Shown here piece after piece: positions 6,986-55,244 of a DNA stretch of 64,000 nt (within the stretch, counting starts at the first letter, position 1; each line of letters starts with the position of its first letter). A program made the translations under genes and the position numbers. The notes beneath the pieces are model-generated. The model searched no databases, was not told where the DNA came from, and was given only the letters and a program-made list of their open reading frames with translations. This stretch comes from Pecten maximus (lineage: Eukaryota): NCBI RefSeq assembly GCF_902652985.1, contig NC_047027.1, positions 33,976,001 through 34,040,000 of the forward strand. Direction: 5' to 3'.

Positions 6986-8553
6986 TTATCCAACAACTGG
7001 CGCAGGACCGGAAACCATTTTTGTTGTCGTCATCGAATCGGTGGTGCTCATGGCAGCTTTTGCTGACGTCATTGTATTCGTTGTTGTATCTGATGAGGCA
7101 GCCATCGTTTGTCCCATCGTGGTCATCATATCGGTAGATGATGCCATTGCTGTCGTCATAGCCTCGGTTGTAGTTGATTCCTCGGTTGTCATGGCAGCGC
7201 CATTGCATGTTCCGTCACTTAAACTGAGTGCGAACCCAGATTTACACTTGGTGCATTTCCCGAGAAAATTGCACGTGTCACAGTTTGTGTCCTTACAGGC
7301 TGAAAAAAGTAATGATAATATGTATTCAATCAACTTATACATCATGTTTTTGTTTTGTTTTTTTGTTTCACTCGAGCATGTCGGCATAGCATGTCGGCCA
7401 TTTACATGAAACTGAACACAAAATGACTATATCATGGAGACCTGACTTTATCATGGAAACATATTTTTTTTTGACGCAAATGACTATTAATTACATTATC
7501 TGACCTTGAGCCAATTGATATTTGATAATAAAAGATATATTATTTTGTACAATAAAATTGGCTTACACATATTTCAATATCAATCTAATATTTCAAAATG
7601 TTTATTAAAAGACATTGGAAATAATACACCAATATACAATATTAAATTGTTCTGACAACAAATCTAGACTCCTTTTTAGTCAGACACATATAGTTTGCTA
7701 TAAAACGTATTTTTATTTAACCCACCTCTACAGATCGAAAACCGGATTTGCTGGCAATAGAACCCAGATGGACACGATGCCAAGCAGACCCCAATACTGA
7801 AACAAATCAATATAAGAATACTGACATCGTTTAAACACTTTTCAGGAAGACATTTTCTCTCTGCTGATGTTTTCTGAAAACAATTTTTTTGAAATTATTT
7901 GGTGTTTCCACTTTAAAATTTGTCCTCACGACATTTTCGTTGTGTTATTTGTTACTTGACTAGAAGTGACGTCACAAAAATCAGTTTATCATATTTTGTA
8001 TGTCAATGGATGAGATTGATTTTCCTATGGGTACAGGCTGTGATATTTCAGTGGGATTACATTATATGATAACGCCATCTCTACACGTGAGCTCGATTGT
8101 GAAGACGTCTATAAGTAACCGTCACCTGAACCCTCCAGTCAACAGGTTATACCTACCTTGATGTGCCATGCTTTTGGTAGTGAAGGCAGTATCCGTTTTC
8201 ACAGAGAGAACACCCCACCTGGCTAGCGCAGGGAGTTATTTTACAATGATCAGGGCAAGCTGCATAAGAGTAAGAATACGTCTACAATGACTTAAATTGA
8301 ATGTTTAATTGGCATATGATTTCTTCCGAAAAAGTTGCATTTTGAAAAACAAATACATTCATCATTTGAATAGTTCCTTCGTTTAAAAATGTGAAAAACC
8401 TTTATTTGCTTGATGAATACAGATTGTGTTGTTAATCCCGCCATACTTACCGCCGTACCCTCCGCTTGTTTCTGTTATTACACTCTCATTAGCGGCTAGA
8501 AATCCTCGGGACGCTTGGAACAGGGCCAATCCCACCACGGATATTAGTAGCAT
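6986..8553 (-). CDS. Secreted R-spondin-like protein (signal peptide + Fu1 + truncated Fu2 + Met/Thr-rich tail), 196 aa, 4 coding exons
   Basis: Exons: 8553-8451 (MLLISVVGLALFQASRG...SGGYG, G|GTAAGT); 8259-8157 (ACPDHCKITPCASQVGCSLCENGYCLHYQKHGTS, AG|GTAGGT); 7796-7726 (SIGVCLASCPSGFYCQQIRFSICR, G|GTGGGT); 7299-6986 (ACKDTNCDTCNFLGKCTKCKSGFALSLSDGTC + Met/Thr tail, TAA). All introns are GT-AG with compatible phases (1,2,1); total 591 nt. AATAAA on the - strand at ~6963-6958 and ~6930-6925. An acceptor at 8563 implies a further upstream exon. IGVCLxSCPSG and CDTCxxxxxCTKCKSGF match vertebrate RSPO3 as I recall it. Confidence 0.85.
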
Positions 8554-9015
8554 ATTGCATGTCTGAAAGAGAATGGATCGTTAACTCATGCTTGTATGAT
8601 CGGGAGTATTCGGCACACGAAAAGTGCCGAAGATTCCGGATTGATTCTTATAAAGCTTCTGCGACTTATATATATATATATATATTTTTTGTTGTTGTTT
8701 TTGTTTTTGTGCTGTTTTTTTGTGATGAAATTCAATTTTTCTCATTTTTTGGGGGTTTCAAATAATGAGAAAATAATTCCAAATAAAAGTTGGTCCACCG
8801 GATGTTTCTTAAAGGGATTCAAAATAGTTCCACTGGTTATTGTATTTGACACCATAAAATTTTACAATCTGACTTCACATATATGAATTGAATATCTACT
8901 TGATTGAAGTGTTTTATGGTAGAAGTTTTGAAGTTGTATTTCTCTCACCTAACCTTTTGATTTCAATAGATTTAGTGACATGAAAAACATGTTCACCTCA
9001 GTCGTGATATTCAGC

Positions 9016-10853
9016 AGGCTAATACAATAGATTGAGACAATTAACCTTACCAGGCTAATACAATAGATTGAGACAATTAACCTTACCAGGCTAATACAAT
9101 AGATTGAGACAATTAACCTTACCAGGCTAATACAATAGATTGAGACAATTAACCTTACCAGGCTAATACAATAGATTGAGACAATTAACCTTACCAGGCT
9201 AATACAATAGATTGAGACAATTAACCTTACCAGGCTAATACAATAGATTGAGACAATTAACCTTACCAGGCTAATACAATAGATTGAGACTATTAACCTT
9301 ACCAGGCTAATACAATAGATTGAGACTATTAACCTTACCAGGCTAATACAATAGATTGAGACAATTAACCTTACCAGGCTAATACAATAGATTGAGACAA
9401 TTAACCTTACCAGGCTAATACAATAGATTGAGACAATTAACCTTACCAGGCTAATACAATAGATTGAGACAATTAACCTTACCAGGCTAATACAATAGAT
9501 TTAGACAATTAATCTTACCAGGCTAATACAATAGATTTAGACAATTAACCTTACCAGGCTAATACAATAGATTGAGACAATTAATCTTACCAGCCTAATA
9601 CAATAGATTGAGACAATTAACCTTACCAGGCTAATACAATAGATTGAGACAATTAATCTTACCAGGCTAATACAATAGATTGAGACTATTAACCTTACCA
9701 GGCTAATACAATAGATTGAGACAATTAACCTTACCAGGCTAATACAATAGATTGAGACAATTAACCTTACCAGGCTAATACAATAGATTGAGACTATTAA
9801 CCTTACCAGGCTAATACAATAGATTGAGACTATTAACCTTACCAGGCTAATACAATAGATTGAGACTATTAACCTTACCAGGCTAATACAATAGATTGAG
9901 ACAATTAACCTTACCAGGCTAATACAATAGATTGAGACAATTAACCTTACCAGGCTAATACAATAGATTGAGACTATTCACCTTACCAGGCTAATACAAT
10001 AGATTGAGACAATTAACCTTACCAGGCTAATACAATAGATTTAGACAATTAACCTTACCAGGCTAATACAATAGATTGAGACAATTAACCTTACCAGGCT
10101 AATACAATAGATTGAGACAATTAACCTTACCAGGCTAATACAATAGATTGAGACAATTAACCTTACCAGGCTAATACAATAGATTGAGACTATTCACCTT
10201 ACCAGGCTAATACAATAGATTGAGACAATTAACCTTACCAGGCTAATACAATAGATTTAGACAATTAACCTTACCAGGCTAATACAATAGATTGAGACAA
10301 TTAACCTTACCAGGCTAATACAATAGATTGAGACAATTAACCTTACCAGGCTAATACAATAGATTGAGACTATTAACCCTACCAGGCTAATACAATAGAT
10401 TGAGACAATTAACCTTACCAGGCTAATACAATAGATTGAGACTATTAACCTTACCAGGCTAATACAATAGATTGAGACAATTAACCTTACCAGGCTAATA
10501 CAATAGATTGAGACTATTAACCTTACCAGGCTAATACAATAGATTGAGACAATTAACCTTACCAGGCTAATACAATAGATTGAGACAATTAACCTTACCA
10601 GGCTAATACAATAGATTGAGACAATTAACCTTACCAGGCTAATACAATAGATTGAGACAATTAACCTTACCAGGCTAATACAATAGATTGAGACAATTAA
10701 CCTTACCAGGCTAATACAATAGATTGAGACAATTAACCTTACCAGGCTAATACAATAGATTGAGACAATTAACCTTACCAGGCTAATACAATAGATTGAG
10801 ACTATTAACCTTACCAGGCTAATACAATAGATTAAGACTATTAACCTTACCAG
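9016..10853. repeat. 36-bp tandem satellite, ~51 copies
   Basis: Unit caggctaatacaatagattgagacaattaaccttac repeated head-to-tail without spacers; only point variants (acaatt/actatt, ttgag/tttag). Confidence 0.98.
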
Positions 10854-11249
10854 AAGTCTTTGATTCTAAAATATGAATTAATTGACTGGTGTACAAAATT
10901 ACGAAAATGCTTTTAGCATCGTTAAACCATTTTACCTTGAATGATTCAAAGGTGAAGCATGATACGTCATTCTATTGAATTAATCCAAATATAATATCTG
11001 AACCCTACATATTACTGCATCTTTTAGTATTAGAAATGACTGACCATTCAAACAATTTTTTTTTATAGAAAATTGGTACAAGACGTAATTTTTCATTTCG
11101 AATAATATTTTGAACAAACTACATCATTTTGTGGAATGCCCCTTGACTAAACCTAGCAATCCATTGTAGCTAGGCATTGCATTCAATATCATGTTTGAAC
11201 TTAAAGCCTTTATTTGTTTTACACCTAGTTAATTTGCACCTCATACCCT

Positions 11250-12295
11250 TTATTTAGTTTACAACTAGTACCCTTTATTTAGTTTACAACTAGTAACCTG
11301 TATTTAGTTAACAACTAGTTACCTGTATTTAGTTTACACCTAGTAACCTGTATTTAGTTCACAACTAGTTACCTGTATTTAGTTTACAACTAGTAACCTG
11401 TATCTAGTTTACAACTAGTAACCTGTATTTAGTTTACAACTAGTAACCTGTATTTAGTTTACAACTAGTAACCTGTATTTAGTTTACAACTAGTAACCTG
11501 TATTTAGTTTACACCTAGTAACCTTTATTTAGTTTACAACTAGTAACCTGTATTTAGTTTACACCTAGTAACCTTTATTTAGTTTACAACTAGTAACCTG
11601 TATTTAGTTTACACCTAGTAACCTGTATTTAGTTTACAACTAGTAACCTGTATTTAGTTTACAACTAGTAACCTTTGTTTAGTTTACAACTAGTTACCTG
11701 TATTTAGTTTACACCTAGTAACCTGTATTTAGTTTACAACTAGTAACCTTTGTTTAGTTTACAACTAGTAACCTGTATTTAGTTTACAACTAGTAACCTG
11801 TTTTTAGTTTACAACTAGTAACCTTTGTTTAGTTTACAACTAGTAACCTGTATTTAGTTTACAACTAGTAACCTGTATTTAGTTTACAACTAGTAACCTG
11901 TATTTAGTTTACAACTAATAACCTGTATTTAGTTTACAACTAGTAACCTGTATTTAGTTTACAACCAGTAACCTGTATTTAGTTTACAACTAGTAGCCTG
12001 TATTTAGTTTACAACTAGTAACCTGTATTTAGTTTACAACTAGTAACCTGTATTTAGTTTACAACTAGTAACCTGTATTTAGTTTACAACTAGTAACCTG
12101 TATTTAGTTTACACCTAGTAACCTGTATTTAGTTTACAACTAGTAACCTGTATTTAGTTTACAACTAGTAACCTATATTTAGTTTACAACTAGTAACCTG
12201 TATTTAGTTTACACCTAGTAACCTGTATTTAGTTTACAACTAGTAACCTGTATTTAGTTTACAACTAGTAACCTGTATTTAGTTTACACCTAATA
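11250..12295. repeat. 25-bp tandem satellite, ~41 copies
   Basis: Unit acctgtatttagtttacaactagta, head-to-tail, with degenerate flanking copies. Confidence 0.97.
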
Positions 12296-17715: not shown

Positions 17716-20700
17716 ATGGACGGGCTTGCTGTGTTTATTATCATCACTGGAATAGTATCACAAGCTGCAGGTAAATAGATATAAAACATATTCTACTTAT
17801 AACACTGTGGTTAACATATCTTAACATATTCGGTAAATGACTCTTACTATTCTCTCATTAGGTTGTATGATTAAAACTATTATTACCTTGGTTTGAAGTC
17901 GTTGTTTTGAGCTACTCTTTTTTAGTTTAAAATTTTATGTTCGAATTTTATTTAATAAGTTGACATCAATTTCTACAAATCATTTTGTGTTAAGTACTTA
18001 TGTTACATGTAATGTTGAAAAAACTTTTATAATTCAATACATACCGGAATGTAGATATATAGAATTTCGCATTCAGCAGTACTTTATCATCAATGAATAA
18101 TTGTTAAGTATCTATTGATTCAATAAGTTATGAAATGTAATTGACAAATGACAACAAACATGAATTTTCATAAAATCGATGGCTATTTTCATCTCTTCCT
18201 TTCTGTTTATATAATCTCGCCATTTTGAAGGTTTAAATATAGACACGTACTACTTAACGAGGCACGATTACTTCATATAGGTAATGACTTTATATGCTCG
18301 TTACCAAATAAGACTATAAAATAAAACTCGTTGTCTTCGTCAATTATTTAATGTGTGGAACGTCAAAATGCTCAAGCGTCATCCAATTAATTTTGGATAT
18401 TACTTTTCTCTCTAAAATTATTTTAAAGACGTTCTATTAATACACATTGAAATATTTCAGGCCTTTTCCTAACCATCGAGCCTCACAAGATACAGTACAT
18501 TGGGGGAAATGACGTCACGATCCGTTGTGGTCTTGGAAAGACTGATATCGAGACAGTTGGATGGATGCAAATATCAAAACAAACTTTATTGATGGAGAAG
18601 AGACCGTATCTGTTGCTGAGAGTGATAGATGGTACAGGGCCAGAATGGAGTTCTGGAATCGACGATGAAAAAATGGACGAAAAAGCATCGGTGAGCTATT
18701 CGACAGTACCATTAGAAGAAACCTATTTGGAATTTACTCTACATCAGATTGAATGTGACGATGGAGGTGTATATTCATGCGAGGTTTCAGGGACGAACCA
18801 GAACGGAAGTGTGATAAAGGAACATATTCGAGAGGAACTCATTGTTTATTGTACGTATCTTATTATTTACATGACTCTTTTTTGTGTATCTATATTTTGA
18901 TCTTATTACACGTTACGTTTTAATGACGCCGAGAAATATTAACAATTGTCAATAATTGTTATTTTCAGAAATATTCATTAATTGGTATTCAATCATAACT
19001 TTTGTTTTTATATGAAGCTTTTGGACAAGAGCCAACTATAACTTACTTCTCGGCCAAGGTGCCTAACCAGGAATTGATTGTGGACTCAGGTAGTGAGGTT
19101 ACGCTCCTGTGTAACGGTCTGGTAGGCAAACCTTCCATGCCAATAACTTGGTACCAATACAACGCTAAAGCGGGAGCGTTTACACAAGTGGAGGAAGGTG
19201 TTAGTCAAGGTAAGAAACATTCATAAACAAACTTACATCACTCAAAAGTTTGATATTTTATTACATGAATGCCTGCTATCCTCAAAGATAGTACAAATCA
19301 ATACACGGAGTTCCTCACAATAATCACAGTAATATAACGTAAATACACTACATAATTAACCACCTAAATAATAAAACACCAACAGGAAGACGAGTGGAAA
19401 CGATATTGACCTGTAATATCAACCATTGTACACAAAATTAAATGCTGGTTAAAAAGTACCCGGTACAGTACATAATGCACAACCGGTGTATATGAAAATA
19501 AAGTTTGGTGATTACAATCAATTATAAGATGTAATGAAGACGTAAATGAATTTTGATATGTTCAGATTTTTGTTATTATGTATATTTCACAATTAGATAT
19601 ATGCTTTATATTTTGAAAGGGTATGTTCATTGACATTTCATATTTGAAATTGAATCCCTATTGAAAAGAATATTTTTTTTCATTAATGTTACTAATATCG
19701 TTATGAGGTTTCTGTAAGGGAAACAAGATATTCAAATTATTTACCAATCGTTTATTTAAAGAAACATTGATGGTTGAAAAGAACAGTATGTGTTCTTACA
19801 ACGGGAGCAGCTACCTGACATTTACTGCGAGCGGTTATGAAACAGAGGTCACATTTAGATGCGGTATCGGTCAGAGGTTTGATACCATTACCGTGATAAC
19901 CACATATACAGCGAGGAGAAGTTGTGAGTAAATCATCATTATAAACATACCTATCTTAGCGATATCTTAGTTTTGAACATTCATTATCGCGCTTATCAAA
20001 GTTTATTCTTACAATTTTTCTAGTAAATAGCGTATTTGCGCAATATCAATATCTTTGTATGCGATTTTGATAATTTGGTAATAAGCTGAAATTAGGAGCG
20101 AAATAGCAAACACATTATTGTTATATATTCTGACCAGGTCATATGTGTATATCACAGTTGTAAGCGAAGCAAACATATTCTATTGAAAGAAATATAAAAA
20201 TCCACCTGCCTATATCCTATTCATTTCGATGGAGAATATATTTCGGTACATGAATGTTAAATACTATGCTTCATTTCTGTTAGTTAATCGGATTTTCGGA
20301 GACGAAAATGTTACTCCGTATCCAGACTCCAGTGCAAACAATAGAAAGGAGAAAGGTTTGTTGTGTTTTATCTGACATTTTTCAACACATAAGGTTTCAT
20401 ATTCTAATCATATAGAAGGAATCTTGCATTATTTTTTATAATGCTTCTTGCTTATATAGTAAGTTATGAAATAATTAAATAGATCAATTTATTTTTCTCC
20501 AAACTTGCAAATAAGTTCATTTGTGTCGAAGAATTGGGATCTCATTACAATCACACCATGTTTAAAAAAAAAACAAAAAAAACGCACAGTAAAATATGTC
20601 AGCTCACTGCATGATGTATTGCATGATTTCATACACTATTTTGTTGTTTTGTTAACCGTTTTTATTGTCATATGTCATTAAATATAATTTAAAATTTACC

Positions 20701-23700
20701 ATTGGCTATATTAATAACACTGACACACATTCCAGATATATATATATCATACTTTTATTTGGACCAGTACAAATCGAGCTGAAGTGGGAAATAAACTTTC
20801 GCATATATATGAGCAGGTATTAGGCAAATAGTAGCAGAATCTAGTCTTTTCGAATTTCTTCGAAGTTCGAAGACAACTTAAAACCTTTCTGTACGCATGG
20901 TGCCTGGTCATTTGTCTGATGAAGATTACAGCGTACATACCATACTAGTGCTGGCTGTATTTTACCAAAGGTATTGTATTTTGTATACAAAACAATACAG
21001 AACATGACAAACATAATGACATTTTGTCATGCCCTTATTAATATGCTACTATTTCATTTCTTTACAGGACTGCTACTCAGCATTAACCCTTCAAAGGTGC
21101 AGTATCAAGGCGACTTTGATGTCACAATAAAATGTTCCATTGGAGATTTAGCTGATAATCTAACAGAATTCGGATATATCCAAATTCAGAAAGAAGGTCC
21201 TGTTTCCTTGAAACGTCCCTACCTAACACTTCGCCGAACAAATGGAACCGGGCCAGAATGGGGAACTGGGATAGATAGGGTGAACCTCGAGAGTAAAAGC
21301 ACAGTGACGTACCGGCGATATCCTTTAGAGGAACTCTTCATACAAGTCACGCTACATAGGATGGAGTGTGATGACGAGGGAATCTACACGTGTGCTCTGT
21401 TTGGAATTTATAATGGACATAGCATGGAAGTGAAGACTAAGAGGGAAGAGCTATCGATATACAGTAAGTAATGTGATGTTGTATGGATAATCGTTATAGG
21501 TATCAGCCTATCGACACAATATGTCATTTTAAAGGACAGTGTCTCCTTTATTGGGATAATGTTAAGTTAAACTTCAATTAAACATTGTGTGTATGTAGCA
21601 ACCTGATATTTGATCCACAAACCTCTCGTTTGACTGAACAATCGCCTCAAGTGAAGGAGTAGTGACGTGATCAAAAAGCCTTTACAGAAGGTGGAAATAT
21701 TGAAACAGAAGTCGTGTTAAGGCAATACCGTAGTAGGTTTACTGTTAATGCACTCACATGGAATATGAATTGCGACACCTAGATTATAATGTCATGATAG
21801 TAAAATCGTGAAATTTTTTTGTTAGAAAAGTAAAAAGGTAAAATATAATAATATCAATCTATCACAACATATGTATCCCTCAAATATCAATAAACTACTA
21901 ACATATAGTTCCCCTTATCTCAATATATACTACTATTATATATTTCCCTTTAATAAAGAATATACTACTTATATATAAATCCCCTTAATATCAGTATATT
22001 AAGCCACTATGCATTTTTCTTGTAGCGTATGCAGGCGAACCACAAATAACAGTAGATGGACAAGTGTACCCTAGCAAGGTAATCCATGCTTATCCTGGCA
22101 CCAATCTCACATTGACGTGTTCCGGACCCGTAGGTAAACCACAAGCGCCTATACAATGGTATAAATACAATATGATGTCTGGAGCCTACATCTACACGAC
22201 GACTGGAACGAAACCAGGTATGTAATTATATACAATGGTTAGTTAATTATCTGCCTTATCACAAAAAAAAAAAAAAAAAATTGGGGCCGCGGTGGCCGAG
22301 TGGTTAAGGTGTCCCGACACTTTATCACTAGCCCCCCACCCTTGGGTTGCGAGTTCGAAACCTACGCCGGGCAGTTGCCAGGTACTGACCGTAGGCCGGA
22401 GTTTTTTCTCCGGGTACTCCGGCTTTCCTCCACCTCCAAAACCTGGCACGTCCTTAATGACCCTGGCTGTTAATAGGACGTTAAACAAAAACAAACAAAC
22501 CAAACACAAACAATACATCGCCCAGGGGGTGTTGTCCGAAATGAGAATATTAAATGTTTTCTAAATACAGACCCCCCCCCCCCCCCCCCCCCTGACAGGA
22601 CTGCATTAACTTGATAGTTCTACCAGTAGGACCTTATTCGCGGGTATTCAATTTCGCGCAACCACGTCCTGTTTTCATTCTTCTGTAAACACTTATTTAC
22701 ATGTTTGTGTATATAACTGTTCGCTTCGTATACATCTTTGCGCTATATTAGGTACCTTGAATACAGCGACTCTAAATCATCCGCGAATATTACAAGAACG
22801 CCTTTTGTTTGCAGCAACCCAAGCTTAAAATGGTGCTTATGTCATTATTTTGATACGCCTTCTAATGGTCTGATCGAAGACCTTTAAAAGCTGTATGTAA
22901 ATATTTTTTTTGTATATAAGTGTATGAGGAAATATATGCAGAATCCATTTCAAGCAAGAAATCTCTTTAACTAAGATAACGGCATAGTTTTAATGCTGGT
23001 GGTTATAATGTAAAACTGCTTGTGAAATAAATTAACGAATTAATGCGTTTCACCACGAATAACAAAATTATATCAGTTTGAATCATTTTTGGTTATAATA
23101 AGACTGCATTTGAATCAGGAATATAATTTTATTAATGTGTCATTTGAACAGATACATCCACTGATTCAGCTTGCATTCAATCTAAACTTTGTTTTGTTTT
23201 TAATAGCATATCTGCATTTTACATTTACCGCTACATTGATTAATCACATAATTCATCTTGACCAGTAACGCCACCTGTCGCGTCATATCCGGGCCAAAAT
23301 TATACGGTTATGCTTAAAAAAACCCACATATTTAGAAACTACAGGGCACTTGAATTCAGAGTTATACTCTCTCATGAATGACCTTGATTTTTCTATTTTT
23401 AGAAACCATTGACTTACCTATTGACCACCTTTGTCGATATACTGGAACGTCCACCATGACATTTCTGACGACTACGTTTGAACAGGATGTGACGTATGAG
23501 TGCAAGATTGGCGCTTTTGCGGATATCATTACCGTTATCGTGGATGGCGGTTCGAATGGTAAGTAGTCACAATTATCTTAAATGGATTCGATTGGTTCTT
23601 ATTGTTTTGCACGCACAAACAGTATCATTGTGCCTACCTGAATTTAGTCAGCATTATAAACAGAAGTCCCCCCCCCCCCTTAGCCATAGAGGTTAAACTA

Positions 23701-52607: not shown

Positions 52608-55244
52608 ATGTCATCGGTAATTCTAATCACGTCTTTTCTGGCGATATTGTCCTCAGGTAAGTTACTTGACAAACATATTGTATTGTTAATTTTATATGAT
52701 AACAATGACCCATATACTTACAACAAGGTCATAAATACTTCAAATATCATACACAGCTTATTTAAACATTGGTTTTCAGCCTGTTGTTACTGCTACGATT
52801 TTACGATAATTATTTGGCATGCGATGTACTTATTGCGTACTGCTTAATTCATATAAAGATGTATATAGATATTTGTGTTATTTCAGTATGTACAATTTTC
52901 TGATAATACAGTAATTGATACATGTAAATGAACTAAATGAGGTTGATGCTTAATGCAAATTTGATGAACAAACATATTCAACCATTTTTCAGTATATTTC
53001 AATTCACGTGGGTAGCGTGTCATAGCAGACTTGATTGATTGACACCCTTTTGGCGTTTTTTTTTATGGATTTCATTCATTTGAATTTCAGGTGTGATGGC
53101 GTTACTTCCGATGGAGCAGAGCATGAATGCCGACATCATGGCTGACGTTATGGACCTCAGAAGAAAGATAATGAAACATCAGATGTTATTGGCTTCTATT
53201 AGAGGGATAAAAGGTGGGAATCAGATTCTCCCTGCAGCTGCGATTGGTATGCGAGACTTCTTCCCACTTTTAGGAGGTGCTTTCCCTCCACAAGCATCAG
53301 GAACAAGTGGATCACAGATAGGTGGAAGTATGCCAGAAGTACCACCATCATTTCAAAATCTTGGAATCGCAAACCAAGGAACCGCACCACAAAAGAATAC
53401 TGGGAAACCTTCGAAAAAGAACAGCTCTATAAAGAATATAGACCAGAGCAGTGGCACTGTTTCATCACCAACACCAGAAGCTATTAATACGATGATTTCA
53501 TCATCAAATAATCAGTTCTCAATGGCCGATTTATTGAAGAATGGACCAATTGGTGGATCTAGTAACAATCCAATGGTTCCCCCTGTTAATACTAACCTAC
53601 AGATTAAAGGCTCATCAAGAACCCCCAAGGGGCAATCAGTGTCAGGTCAAGGGAAGGGAACAAAACCGGTAAAAAACCCAACCAAAGCTGGAGCTTCACA
53701 GATATCAGCACCATCTGGTAATGCAGGACAACCTGCCATGCCTTTTCCACAGCAATCGAGTCTTTCAGCTTTCAGGAAGTTCTATATACAACAAGAGTTA
53801 TGCTCTGAAACACCGTCCAGGCTAACAACGATGTGCAGCACGACGCTTGATTGCAGACATAACATGCAATGCTTTTCCGGAAGATGTTGTGCTTCTAGTC
53901 ACATACATGCTGAAATACTGGGTAAGTAGTTAATGCAGTTTTTTCAATAAATGTGATATAAATAGAGGTTACACAACGAGTGGTTGTTGGAAATGGAATT
54001 TATTTCACACGAGTAAGTTATTTTTTAAAAGTTACAAAAGACACAAGCTTTCACGAGTGTGAAATAAATGCCATTTCCAACAATTTCGAGTCGTGTGACC
54101 TGTTTCTACCACAATAATATCGGCTTGAATCAAAGGGAAACGTGGCCAAGCATAATTTCGCGTATGCAAATAAAGTGTACCGGTGACGTCCGGGACCCGG
54201 TGATGTGACGTCATTAGATTATTGATGACGTCAATAACAATTGCAGCTTGGGTCAAAGTTCACCGAGTTAGCCAATCAAAATGCGTACAGAGTTTATATC
54301 ACGTGTGGTATAAATAGATTGTTAATCAACAGCTGTAATGATTAACTGATGGTCTGAGAGTTGAATAACACAGGGTATTGTGGTAGAAATTAAAATAATA
54401 GCATGTTTAAACAGAGAAGTAAGAATACTAACGTTTGATGAGTTATTTCCAATGCATATGATATCAACGTAATTATAATGAGAAATTATAGAATTAAGAA
54501 ACAATGATATGATGTACTTTAATTGTTAAGTAATTAATTAAGTGTTTGCAATAGATGCGATATTAATTTAAACAATTACAAAATTTAAACAGAGTAGCTA
54601 GAGAATTACAAAACAGCTGTATGAGTTATGGTCAATGCATATGATATAAACGTAGGCGTACATAATTAAACTGCGAAGTTATAGAATAAGAAACAATGAA
54701 GTGCTATACTTTAATTGTTTCATCCTAGCTCTAGATTATATAGCTTTTTATATGTTTCGACTGGGATACCTTATTCAGTGAGTATATTTGTATAATCTAC
54801 TGAATTTATACCGACATATCTGTGATGCAAACATCATCATAATATCTAAATATGCATACTTCCTGACATCGGTAAACATCTGATGGAGTGGAAGTTGAAA
54901 TATCCCAGTTGAATTATTTTAAGATTACAATTCAGCATAATACGTTCCGACTCCTAAAACTGTAGAAATGTTTAAACTTTTATACGGTAGAATACACCTT
55001 ATAGATTCCGACATTTAATGATATTGAGCGGAAAATTTATCTAGAAAATTCAAGCCGTACACATAAAAATGTTTGCCATCTTATAAAAATTGTTCGAGCG
55101 TGAAACTGTATATTCTTTTCATTGTATAAATATTTGAGCATTTAATGCCGAATGATATTTTTTAATGCTTGCGCGTATTAACAGGGAATCCCTTTGTTTT
55201 ATTTTACAGACAACATGCTTGAACAGCCAGGAATGCGACTGTGA
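52608..55244 (+). CDS. Secreted Met/Gly/Ser/Pro-rich protein with C-terminal LCSETPSR Cys module (cluster gene C), ~304 aa
   Basis: Exon 1 52608-52656 (MSSVILITSFLAILSS, 49 nt, G|GTAAGT). Exon 2 53091-53921 (GVMALLPMEQSM...LCSETPSRLTTMCSTTLDCRHNMQCFSGRCCASSHIHAEIL, G|GTAAGT). Exon 3 55210-55244 (DNMLEQPGMRL*). AATAAA at ~55467. Confidence 0.87.
53960..54390. mobile_element. Fold-back/MITE-like element in gene C intron 2
   Basis: ~53965-54012 (gttggaaatggaatttatttcacac) pairs with ~54052-54100. tttctaccacaata (54102-54115) pairs with tattgtggtagaaa (54376-54389). Confidence 0.65.

Follow-up and report, generated by a model that had tools for sequence, protein, structure and literature searches.

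R-spondins (RSPO) have been defined by the presence of two furin repeats (Fu1 and Fu2) and a TSR-1 domain (PMC3937510), and a plan of one exon per domain (signal peptide, Fu1 and Fu2) is known for RSPO4 and vertebrate RSPO genes (PMC3532313). In RSPO1, residues S48, N51, R66 and Q71 contact ZNRF3/RNF43, and the Phe clamp F106/F110, together with K59 and R87, contacts LGR receptors; a single change at R66, Q71, F106 or F110 abolishes binding (PMC3937510; PMC12111769). RSPO homologs have been described in Mollusca, Annelida and Brachiopoda, the interpretation being that each protostome has a single RSPO4-like copy and that the origin of RSPO is bilaterian (PMC12111769, published in 2025). Here we describe a short R-spondin-like gene located on the minus strand of a 64-kb stretch of the genome of the scallop Pecten maximus (contig C13, positions 33,976,001-34,040,000; hereafter the window). 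We consider it likely that this is a single-copy gene for a small secreted protein, which belongs to a short R-spondin-like family devoid of the TSP1 domain and separate from the canonical RSPOs, and which probably does not exert the bridging of LGR and ZNRF3/RNF43.

Gene structure and R-spondin-like core

Sequence reading and per-exon translation revealed four coding exons on the minus strand between window positions 6986 and 8562, with GT-AG dinucleotides at all borders and a continuous reading frame:

8562..8451, minus strand: exon 1 seen in the window, encoding the predicted signal peptide and a short N-terminal stretch (residues 2-38 and the first base of codon 39, in the numbering of the 200-residue protein)
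8259..8157, minus strand: exon 2, first half of Fu1 from C40 to S72, with C63 as the first of two extra cysteines; preceded by a phase-1 intron and followed by a phase-2 intron
7796..7726, minus strand: exon 3, second half of Fu1 (residues 74-96), including the second extra cysteine C87
7299..6986, minus strand: last exon, Fu2 to C128 followed by a tail of about 70 residues ending in PAPVVG, with the stop codon at 6988-6986
6964-6959, minus strand: AATAAA polyadenylation-type hexamer read from the sequence, 21 bases past the stop

Exon 1 is preceded by an acceptor AG at 8564-8563 and followed by a donor GT at 8450-8449. The corresponding acceptor and donor dinucleotides are located at 8261-8260 and 8156-8155 for exon 2, and at 7798-7797 and 7725-7724 for exon 3, and the acceptor of the last exon is at 7301-7300. 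The intron phases are, in order, 1, 2 and 1, with split codons encoding Ala, Ser and Ala. The intron between exons 2 and 3 interrupts the Fu1 hairpin of the short protein, and the phase-1 intron between Fu1 and Fu2 falls in the codon directly before the first Fu2 cysteine. An in-frame TAA is present at 8583-8581, upstream of 8562, and therefore the initiator ATG must reside in a further upstream exon. Two satellite arrays were observed upstream of exon 1, one at 9015-10853 (36-bp unit, 51 copies, 97% matches) and the other at 11247-12292 (25-bp unit, 42 copies, 94% matches); both probably fall within the intron that separates exon 1 from the further upstream exon.

The exon translations are identical to residues 2-200 of the 200-residue database protein XP_033759271.1, "R-spondin-2-like [Pecten maximus]", whose residues 2-34 were located by tblastn with 100% identity at 8562-8464; this protein was used in the full-length searches, the structural model and the trees. 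A previous sequence-only reading of this DNA had proposed a hidden R-spondin-like gene of a mollusc, with four in-phase GT-AG exons encoding 196 residues from a Met codon at 8553. The peptide that it quoted agrees exactly with our exon-by-exon translation, and the 100% identity to a P. maximus RefSeq entry confirms the molluscan host. On the contrary, the gene was not hidden, being already present in RefSeq under a name of the kind ('R-spondin-like') that the same reading had anticipated from automated annotation, and its start has to be corrected: the Met codon at 8553 is Met5 of the 200-residue database model, and the exon begins at 8562.

A search of the P. maximus assembly (918 Mb, 3983 contigs) showed the short gene to be single copy in its own genome; a second copy was discarded, as the sole other match was the Fu1 exon of the canonical RSPO gene (E 0.05). 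Three other scallops carry orthologs: Argopecten irradians, Ylistrum balloti and Mizuhopecten yessoensis, the last with a pair of genes on the same contig. Within the cysteine-rich part, identity amounts to 75-84%, and the M-(T/A)-C protein start is common to three of the four scallop orthologs. All the cysteines of the furin repeats (16 in the mature protein) are invariant across the four scallop genera and the tail varies freely, a pattern that argues for purifying selection on the core. The contig that carries both family genes of M. yessoensis has a length of 626 kb, and a predicted isoform of this species (X2, 121 residues) diverges exactly past the motif ...SICR, which fits the position of the Fu1/Fu2 intron in P. 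maximus. Scallop C-termini keep a conserved PAPVVG/GPLVG motif despite the high variability of the tail. Of ten aligned members of the short family, eight end in Gly, which may represent a candidate signal for C-terminal amidation. Only six residues follow a conserved Ser-Gly near the C-terminus, and a glycosylphosphatidylinositol anchor or a transmembrane tail was discarded on that basis.

Sequence, fold and the position of one intron support the R-spondin-like nature of the protein core. Residues 47-131 matched the Pfam family PF15913 (Furin-like_2) with 38.6 bits (E 1.3e-9, profile positions 5-88 of 102), above the curated cut-off of 28 bits; when single exons were scanned, a weak match was obtained in the last exon only (13.3 bits, profile positions 57-88 of 102). 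In a phmmer search of the PDB, all 13 chains at E<1 were RSPO1/2, with E-values from 6.6e-10 (the best) to 1.6e-6 for RSPO Fu1-Fu2, and no PCSK or insulin/EGF receptor repeat appeared among the matches at that threshold. A profile built from the four scallop orthologs, searched against 1.84 billion representatives, retrieved vertebrate RSPO3, RSPO1, RSPO4 and RSPO2 together with a few short mollusc proteins. The nearest non-scallop matches over a single stretch were vertebrate RSPO3/1, and one bacterial repeat protein outscored the RSPOs through 15 short stretches.

The AlphaFold model of the protein showed predicted local distance difference test (pLDDT) values above 90 over residues 40-130 and of about 50 in the tail. 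All 34 Foldseek matches at E≤1e-3 corresponded to Fu1-Fu2 of RSPO1/2, at about 2 Å and with a best E-value of 4e-7; for most RSPO matches the root-mean-square deviation was 1.6-2.6 Å, with target-normalised template modelling (TM) scores of 0.56-0.86. Next in rank were IGF1R, the insulin receptor and Eph, with E>0.1. The Atlas's independent model also ranked RSPO2/4/1 first, ahead of PCSK6 and VSP, whose models reached TM scores of 0.65-0.72. PCSK-type, EGFR/insulin receptor-type and VSP-type repeats were rejected as closest kin, since they rank clearly below RSPO in the structure searches and the PDB sequence matches are all RSPO. Furthermore, PCSK5/6 proteins are recognized by subtilisin-like peptidase S8 and P domains placed before many repeats, and PF15913 is the sole Pfam family found in the 200 residues and two repeats of the short protein.

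The spacing of cysteines and the gene plan follow the same trend. The long Fu1 hairpin spans 19 positions between cysteines (C58-C77 here, C56-C75 in RSPO1), and the Fu2 spacing C98-C103-C106-C112-C115 is equal to that of C97-C102-C105-C111-C114 in RSPO1. The Fu1/Fu2 intron is identical in position and phase to that of the canonical RSPO gene of the same genome, and the short gene fits the plan of one exon per domain save for the extra intron within Fu1. The hydrophobic N-terminus was modelled as a helix (residues 3-20) and the first Fu1 cysteine is residue 40, so that a signal peptide running straight into the furin repeats, as expected of an R-spondin, is predicted. The protein would be secreted and would act extracellularly through a rigid Fu1-Fu2 rod. 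The hairpin length and Fu2 spacing put forward in the sequence-only reading both hold, and the comparisons that it proposed with Furin-like_2, with PCSK, EGFR and VSP-type repeats and with the RSPO Fu1-Fu2 structure resulted, respectively, in a match above cut-off, in RSPO as first-ranked kin with the others clearly lower, and in a superposition at about 2 Å.

The canonical scallop R-spondin and the departures of the short protein

A whole-genome scan with PF15913 placed two exons of contig C4 far ahead, and the locus of the short gene was not among the eight matches listed. The genes relevant to the R-spondin module that were located outside the window are the following:

Contig C4, about 32,776,700-32,784,200: canonical RSPO gene with Fu1, Fu2 and TSP1_spondin exons (L001 1472-1663; L002 1505-1654 and 1974-2159)
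Contig C8, 37,180,631-37,192,399, minus strand: ZNRF3/RNF43-type ectodomain gene (PF18212), with three collinear exon matches (L009-L011) of 24.3, 29.1 and 19.9 bits

In the C4 gene, Fu1 scored 70.3 bits, Fu2 45.0 bits and TSP1_spondin 42.2 bits (cut-off 41). The Fu2 exon is located about 6.6 kb past the Fu1 exon, with TSP1_spondin about 320 bases further on; every intron seen is of phase 1, and Fu1 is contained in one exon. The encoded protein keeps S48, N51, R66, Q71, R87 and F106, with Tyr at position 110; the loop motif of Fu1 and the two aromatic residues of Fu2 are thus preserved. These data indicate that the C4 gene, and not the gene of the window, is the canonical R-spondin of the scallop. 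The PF18212 matches on C8, obtained in a search that the sequence-only reading had suggested, indicate that this animal also possesses the ubiquitin-ligase arm of the module. Regarding the receptor arm, the best-characterised invertebrate type B LGR is Drosophila Lgr2, whose known ligand is the hormone bursicon, conserved in mollusks as well (PMC3937510).

The short protein lacks several parts of a canonical R-spondin. The last hairpin of Fu2 (C129-C142 in RSPO1) is absent, with profile positions 89-102 unmatched and no cysteine beyond C128. No Pfam match to a TSP1 domain was obtained in XP_033759271.1, no W-x-x-W-type motif was found in any frame of the window, and tblastn with canonical mollusc RSPOs gave no TSP1 match in the window on the strand of the gene; the motif scan and the tblastn search led us to reject a downstream TSP1 exon. 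The basic C-terminal region is also absent: Thr, Ser, Met and Ala are abundant in the tail, which contains several Asp and Glu and two Lys only. With no TSP1 domain, the short protein fails the published definition of an R-spondin. The proposal of an R-spondin-like gene made in the sequence-only reading stands as far as the sequence, fold and intron of the core are concerned; it does not extend to the TSP1 domain and the contact residues, which are missing, nor to the position of canonical scallop RSPO, which corresponds to the C4 gene.

The residues equivalent to S48, N51, R66 and Q71 are replaced by A, V, K and S in the short scallop protein, and those equivalent to F106, F110, K59 and R87 by N, K, G and Q; the same replacements are visible in the alignment to RSPO2. 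Among 30 canonical RSPOs, including those of molluscs, the columns of the ZNRF3/RNF43 contacts show S in 29, N in 29, R in 28 and Q or H in all 30, and those of the LGR contacts show F at F106 in 29, F or Y at F110 in all 30, K or R at K59 in 28 and R at R87 in 28. The equivalents of RSPO1 F61 and G85 are both cysteines (C63 and C87) in the short protein, whose 16 mature cysteines correspond to seven canonical pairs and one extra pair. The extra cysteines would pair and so link the second Fu1 hairpin to the third by a disulfide. A conserved N-glycosylation sequon was found in the short N-terminal stretch, and the tail, disordered and probably O-glycosylated, would stand where canonical RSPOs have the TSP1 and basic domains.

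The short protein has lost the two receptor faces as well as the TSP1/basic part that binds proteoglycans, and the canonical scallop RSPO keeps all of these. This makes bridging unlikely. Judging from its residues, the short protein most likely does not bridge LGR to ZNRF3/RNF43, and is more likely to have another partner.

Short relatives, rival explanations and genomic surroundings

Outside scallops, the following short relatives were identified:

Haliotis rufescens XP_046355242.1, 112 residues: short, without TSP1
Sinanodonta woodiana, 120 residues, two copies: short, without TSP1
Potamilus streckersoni, 122 residues: short, without TSP1
The chiton Liolophura sinensis XP_064598601.1, 133 residues: short, without TSP1, named "PCSK5-like" by NCBI
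Branchiostoma (92-93 residues), Haliotis rubra (82 residues) and one unplaced protein of 98 residues: Fu1-only proteins

These forms stop right after the cysteine equivalent to RSPO1 C125, or after Fu1, and four of the five that were scanned score below the PF15913 cut-off. The contact residues are lost in all of them, with R66 kept as Lys or Arg in most. Four residues separate the second and third cysteines in all short forms but that of H. rufescens, as compared with two in canonical RSPOs. The extra pair of cysteines is present in eight of nine short mollusc forms, with neither cysteine in the chiton or in canonical RSPOs; this both-or-neither pattern is as expected from a disulfide. A word-indexed search with the short-family alignment revealed no new members.

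In a tree of Fu1-Fu2 (90 columns), the short mollusc forms were split from all canonical RSPOs, including those of molluscs, by a branch with support values of 99/99 (93/98 for the corresponding branch of an earlier tree with more rows), and the canonical mollusc RSPOs grouped with the vertebrate ones. In both trees the short protein fell outside the canonical RSPO clade. In a tree of Fu1 only (57 columns), the Branchiostoma, unplaced 98-residue and Haliotis rubra proteins joined the short family (99/97). Given the long branches and few columns, the wider family with Fu1-only members is to be taken as a lead, and not as a result.

Several observations weigh against a separate short family without bridging activity. 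The gene model and the proposed function are read from genomic sequence, comparison and predicted structure, and the alignment behind the AlphaFold model included R-spondins, a bias that favours the RSPO fold. PF15913 is also present in non-RSPO proteins of cnidarians, rotifers and fungi. The loss of contact residues need not mean loss of binding, an interface co-evolved with the scallop receptors being possible. The approximately unbiased test does not reject the grouping of short and canonical mollusc sequences (p 0.077); the family may accordingly derive from an ancient duplication, or from one within molluscs after which the sequences changed rapidly. The short forms have long branches that may be drawn together in the trees, so that parallel divergence could give the false impression of a family. 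Finally, some short entries, especially the Fu1-only ones of 82-93 residues, may be truncated gene models.

Alternatively, the short gene might encode a generic secreted protein with two furin repeats, of the PCSK5/6, VSP or PF15913 type, whose likeness to R-spondins would derive from shared cysteine spacing and not from specific kinship. The occurrence of PF15913 clusters in Cnidaria, Rotifera and fungi, the TM scores of the PCSK6 and VSP models, the 'PCSK5/6-like' names given by NCBI to the chiton and Haliotis rubra relatives, the position of the short forms outside all canonical RSPOs and their mostly sub-threshold Pfam scores are in line with this explanation. We regard it as unlikely, since R-spondins, and not PCSK, EGFR or insulin receptor repeats, give the best single-stretch matches both in the PDB and among the 1.84 billion representatives, the long Fu1 hairpin has the RSPO length and the cysteines of Fu2 the RSPO spacing, a phase-1 intron interrupts the same codon in the canonical RSPO gene of this genome, and the exon plan matches that of RSPO genes (PMC3532313). 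Another explanation is that of a working R-spondin, which would bridge LGR4/5/6-type receptors and ZNRF3/RNF43 and boost Wnt through an interface co-evolved in molluscs, with a mucin-like tail replacing TSP1 for surface retention. In vertebrates, Wnt enhancement requires Fu1-Fu2 and no other part of the protein (PMC3937510), and the RSPO fold, the RSPO-only sequence matches, the ZNRF3/RNF43-type ectodomain gene on C8 and the Lys or Arg found at R66 in most short forms would also agree with such an activity. However, eight of eight contact positions differ, including Q71 and both residues of the Phe clamp (where a single mutation abolishes LGR binding), the final Fu2 hairpin is missing, and the canonical scallop RSPO keeps nearly all contacts, so that the receptors have not obviously drifted; a working R-spondin is, in our opinion, quite improbable. 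The RefSeq entry is a computed model, and a decaying duplicate or an artefact of gene prediction, devoid of function, might also be considered. We give very little credit to this idea in view of the open frame maintained over four exons with consensus splice sites, of the 16 mature cysteines and the 75-84% of the cysteine-rich part kept in four scallop genera while the tail drifts, and of the high confidence with which the core folds in the model.

Beyond the probable existence of a short TSP1-less family separate from canonical RSPOs, we tentatively propose, as a possibility that falls short of being likely, that these 'mini-R-spondins' constitute an old sister family of R-spondins, present at least in molluscs (chiton, abalone, unionid mussels and scallops) and perhaps in amphioxus, with the Fu1-Fu2 rod or only Fu1 retained, that either never had TSP1 or lost it early, and that would act on another receptor through a disulfide-stiffened surface or as modulators of the LGR-ZNRF3/RNF43 axis. 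If this were true, the furin-repeat module of RSPO would have diversified before the protostome-deuterostome split. If the short proteins signal through a receptor of their own, or tune the ZNRF3/LGR axis, molluscs would possess a new class of extracellular signalling factors. Such proteins would also show, as in a natural experiment, what R-spondin activity requires of the Fu1-Fu2 scaffold.

The sequence-only reading had also presented the gene as moving the origin of the Fu1-Fu2 module back to the bilaterian ancestor. Protostome RSPOs had been published in 2025 (PMC12111769) and are better shown by the C4 gene, so this evolutionary claim is neither new nor dependent on the short gene; the new part is the undescribed short RSPO-like family. 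The sole bivalve found in the species table of PMC12111769 is Crassostrea gigas, Pecten and Mizuhopecten are absent from its files, and the short TSP1-less family is not mentioned in that paper. A search of the literature on R-spondin in connection with scallop, shell matrix, mantle or byssus yielded nothing on the short gene. That paper describes a single protostome RSPO copy, whereas a further, short protein without TSP1 is present in scallops, unionid mussels, abalone and a chiton. It has to be noted that the names 'R-spondin-2-like' and 'PCSK5-like' attached to short proteins should not be taken as orthology.

Regarding the surroundings of the gene, the window contains the following open frames:

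18365-18900 and 20974-21471, plus strand: immunoglobulin-like, with D-D-G-x-Y-x-C motifs; neighbouring gene
40738-41278, 46753-48630 and 53093-53929: large open frames of low-complexity secreted type (Gly/Met/Ala/Pro-rich and Thr/Ser-rich) with a common terminal Cys module

Residues 91-148 of a clam RSPO gave a weak tblastn match (E 0.089) at 18365-18538, on the strand opposite to the short gene. The presence of the large low-complexity frames indicates that the short RSPO-like gene sits near other secreted low-complexity genes.

Comparison with known systems

The furin repeats of PCSK5/6 and of the insulin/EGF receptors share with the short protein an architecture of disulfide-stapled beta-hairpins. 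The short protein differs from these families in having neither a peptidase nor a receptor domain, and Foldseek separates both groups clearly (E>0.1 for IGF1R and the insulin receptor, as compared with 4e-7 for RSPO).

The resemblance to Fu1-Fu2 of vertebrate RSPO1-4 (PDB 4KT1, 4UFR, 4CDK and 8XFS) is closer, with superpositions of 1.6-2.5 Å over about 80-97 columns and 31-37% identity. In comparison with these proteins, the short protein shows a one-residue deletion in the Fu1-Fu2 linker and replaced residues at the ZNRF3 loop of RSPO2 and at the Phe clamp; it has lost the third Fu2 hairpin, TSP1 and the basic tail, and has gained a pair of cysteines.

Canonical mollusc RSPOs (the C4 gene, those of Sinanodonta and Tegillarca, and that of Crassostrea gigas in PMC12111769) are like the short protein in the succession of signal peptide, Fu1 and Fu2, in the 14 core cysteines, in the length of the long Fu1 hairpin and in the phase-1 intron before the first Fu2 cysteine. 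The C4 gene matches PF15913 with 70 and 45 bits, as compared with 38.6 bits for the short protein, and only the canonical gene has a TSP1_spondin exon, a complete Fu2, the kept contact residues and an undivided Fu1 exon. On the other hand, only the short protein exhibits the extra cysteine pair and a two-residue insert between the second and third cysteines.

Finally, the short protein of P. maximus shares with its short relatives the truncation, the lost contacts and, in most cases, the terminal Gly, at identities of 29-36%. Within this group, the chiton and amphioxus forms are devoid of the extra cysteine pair, which is present in the bivalve and abalone forms, and the long Thr/Ser/Met-rich tail is exclusive to the scallop proteins.

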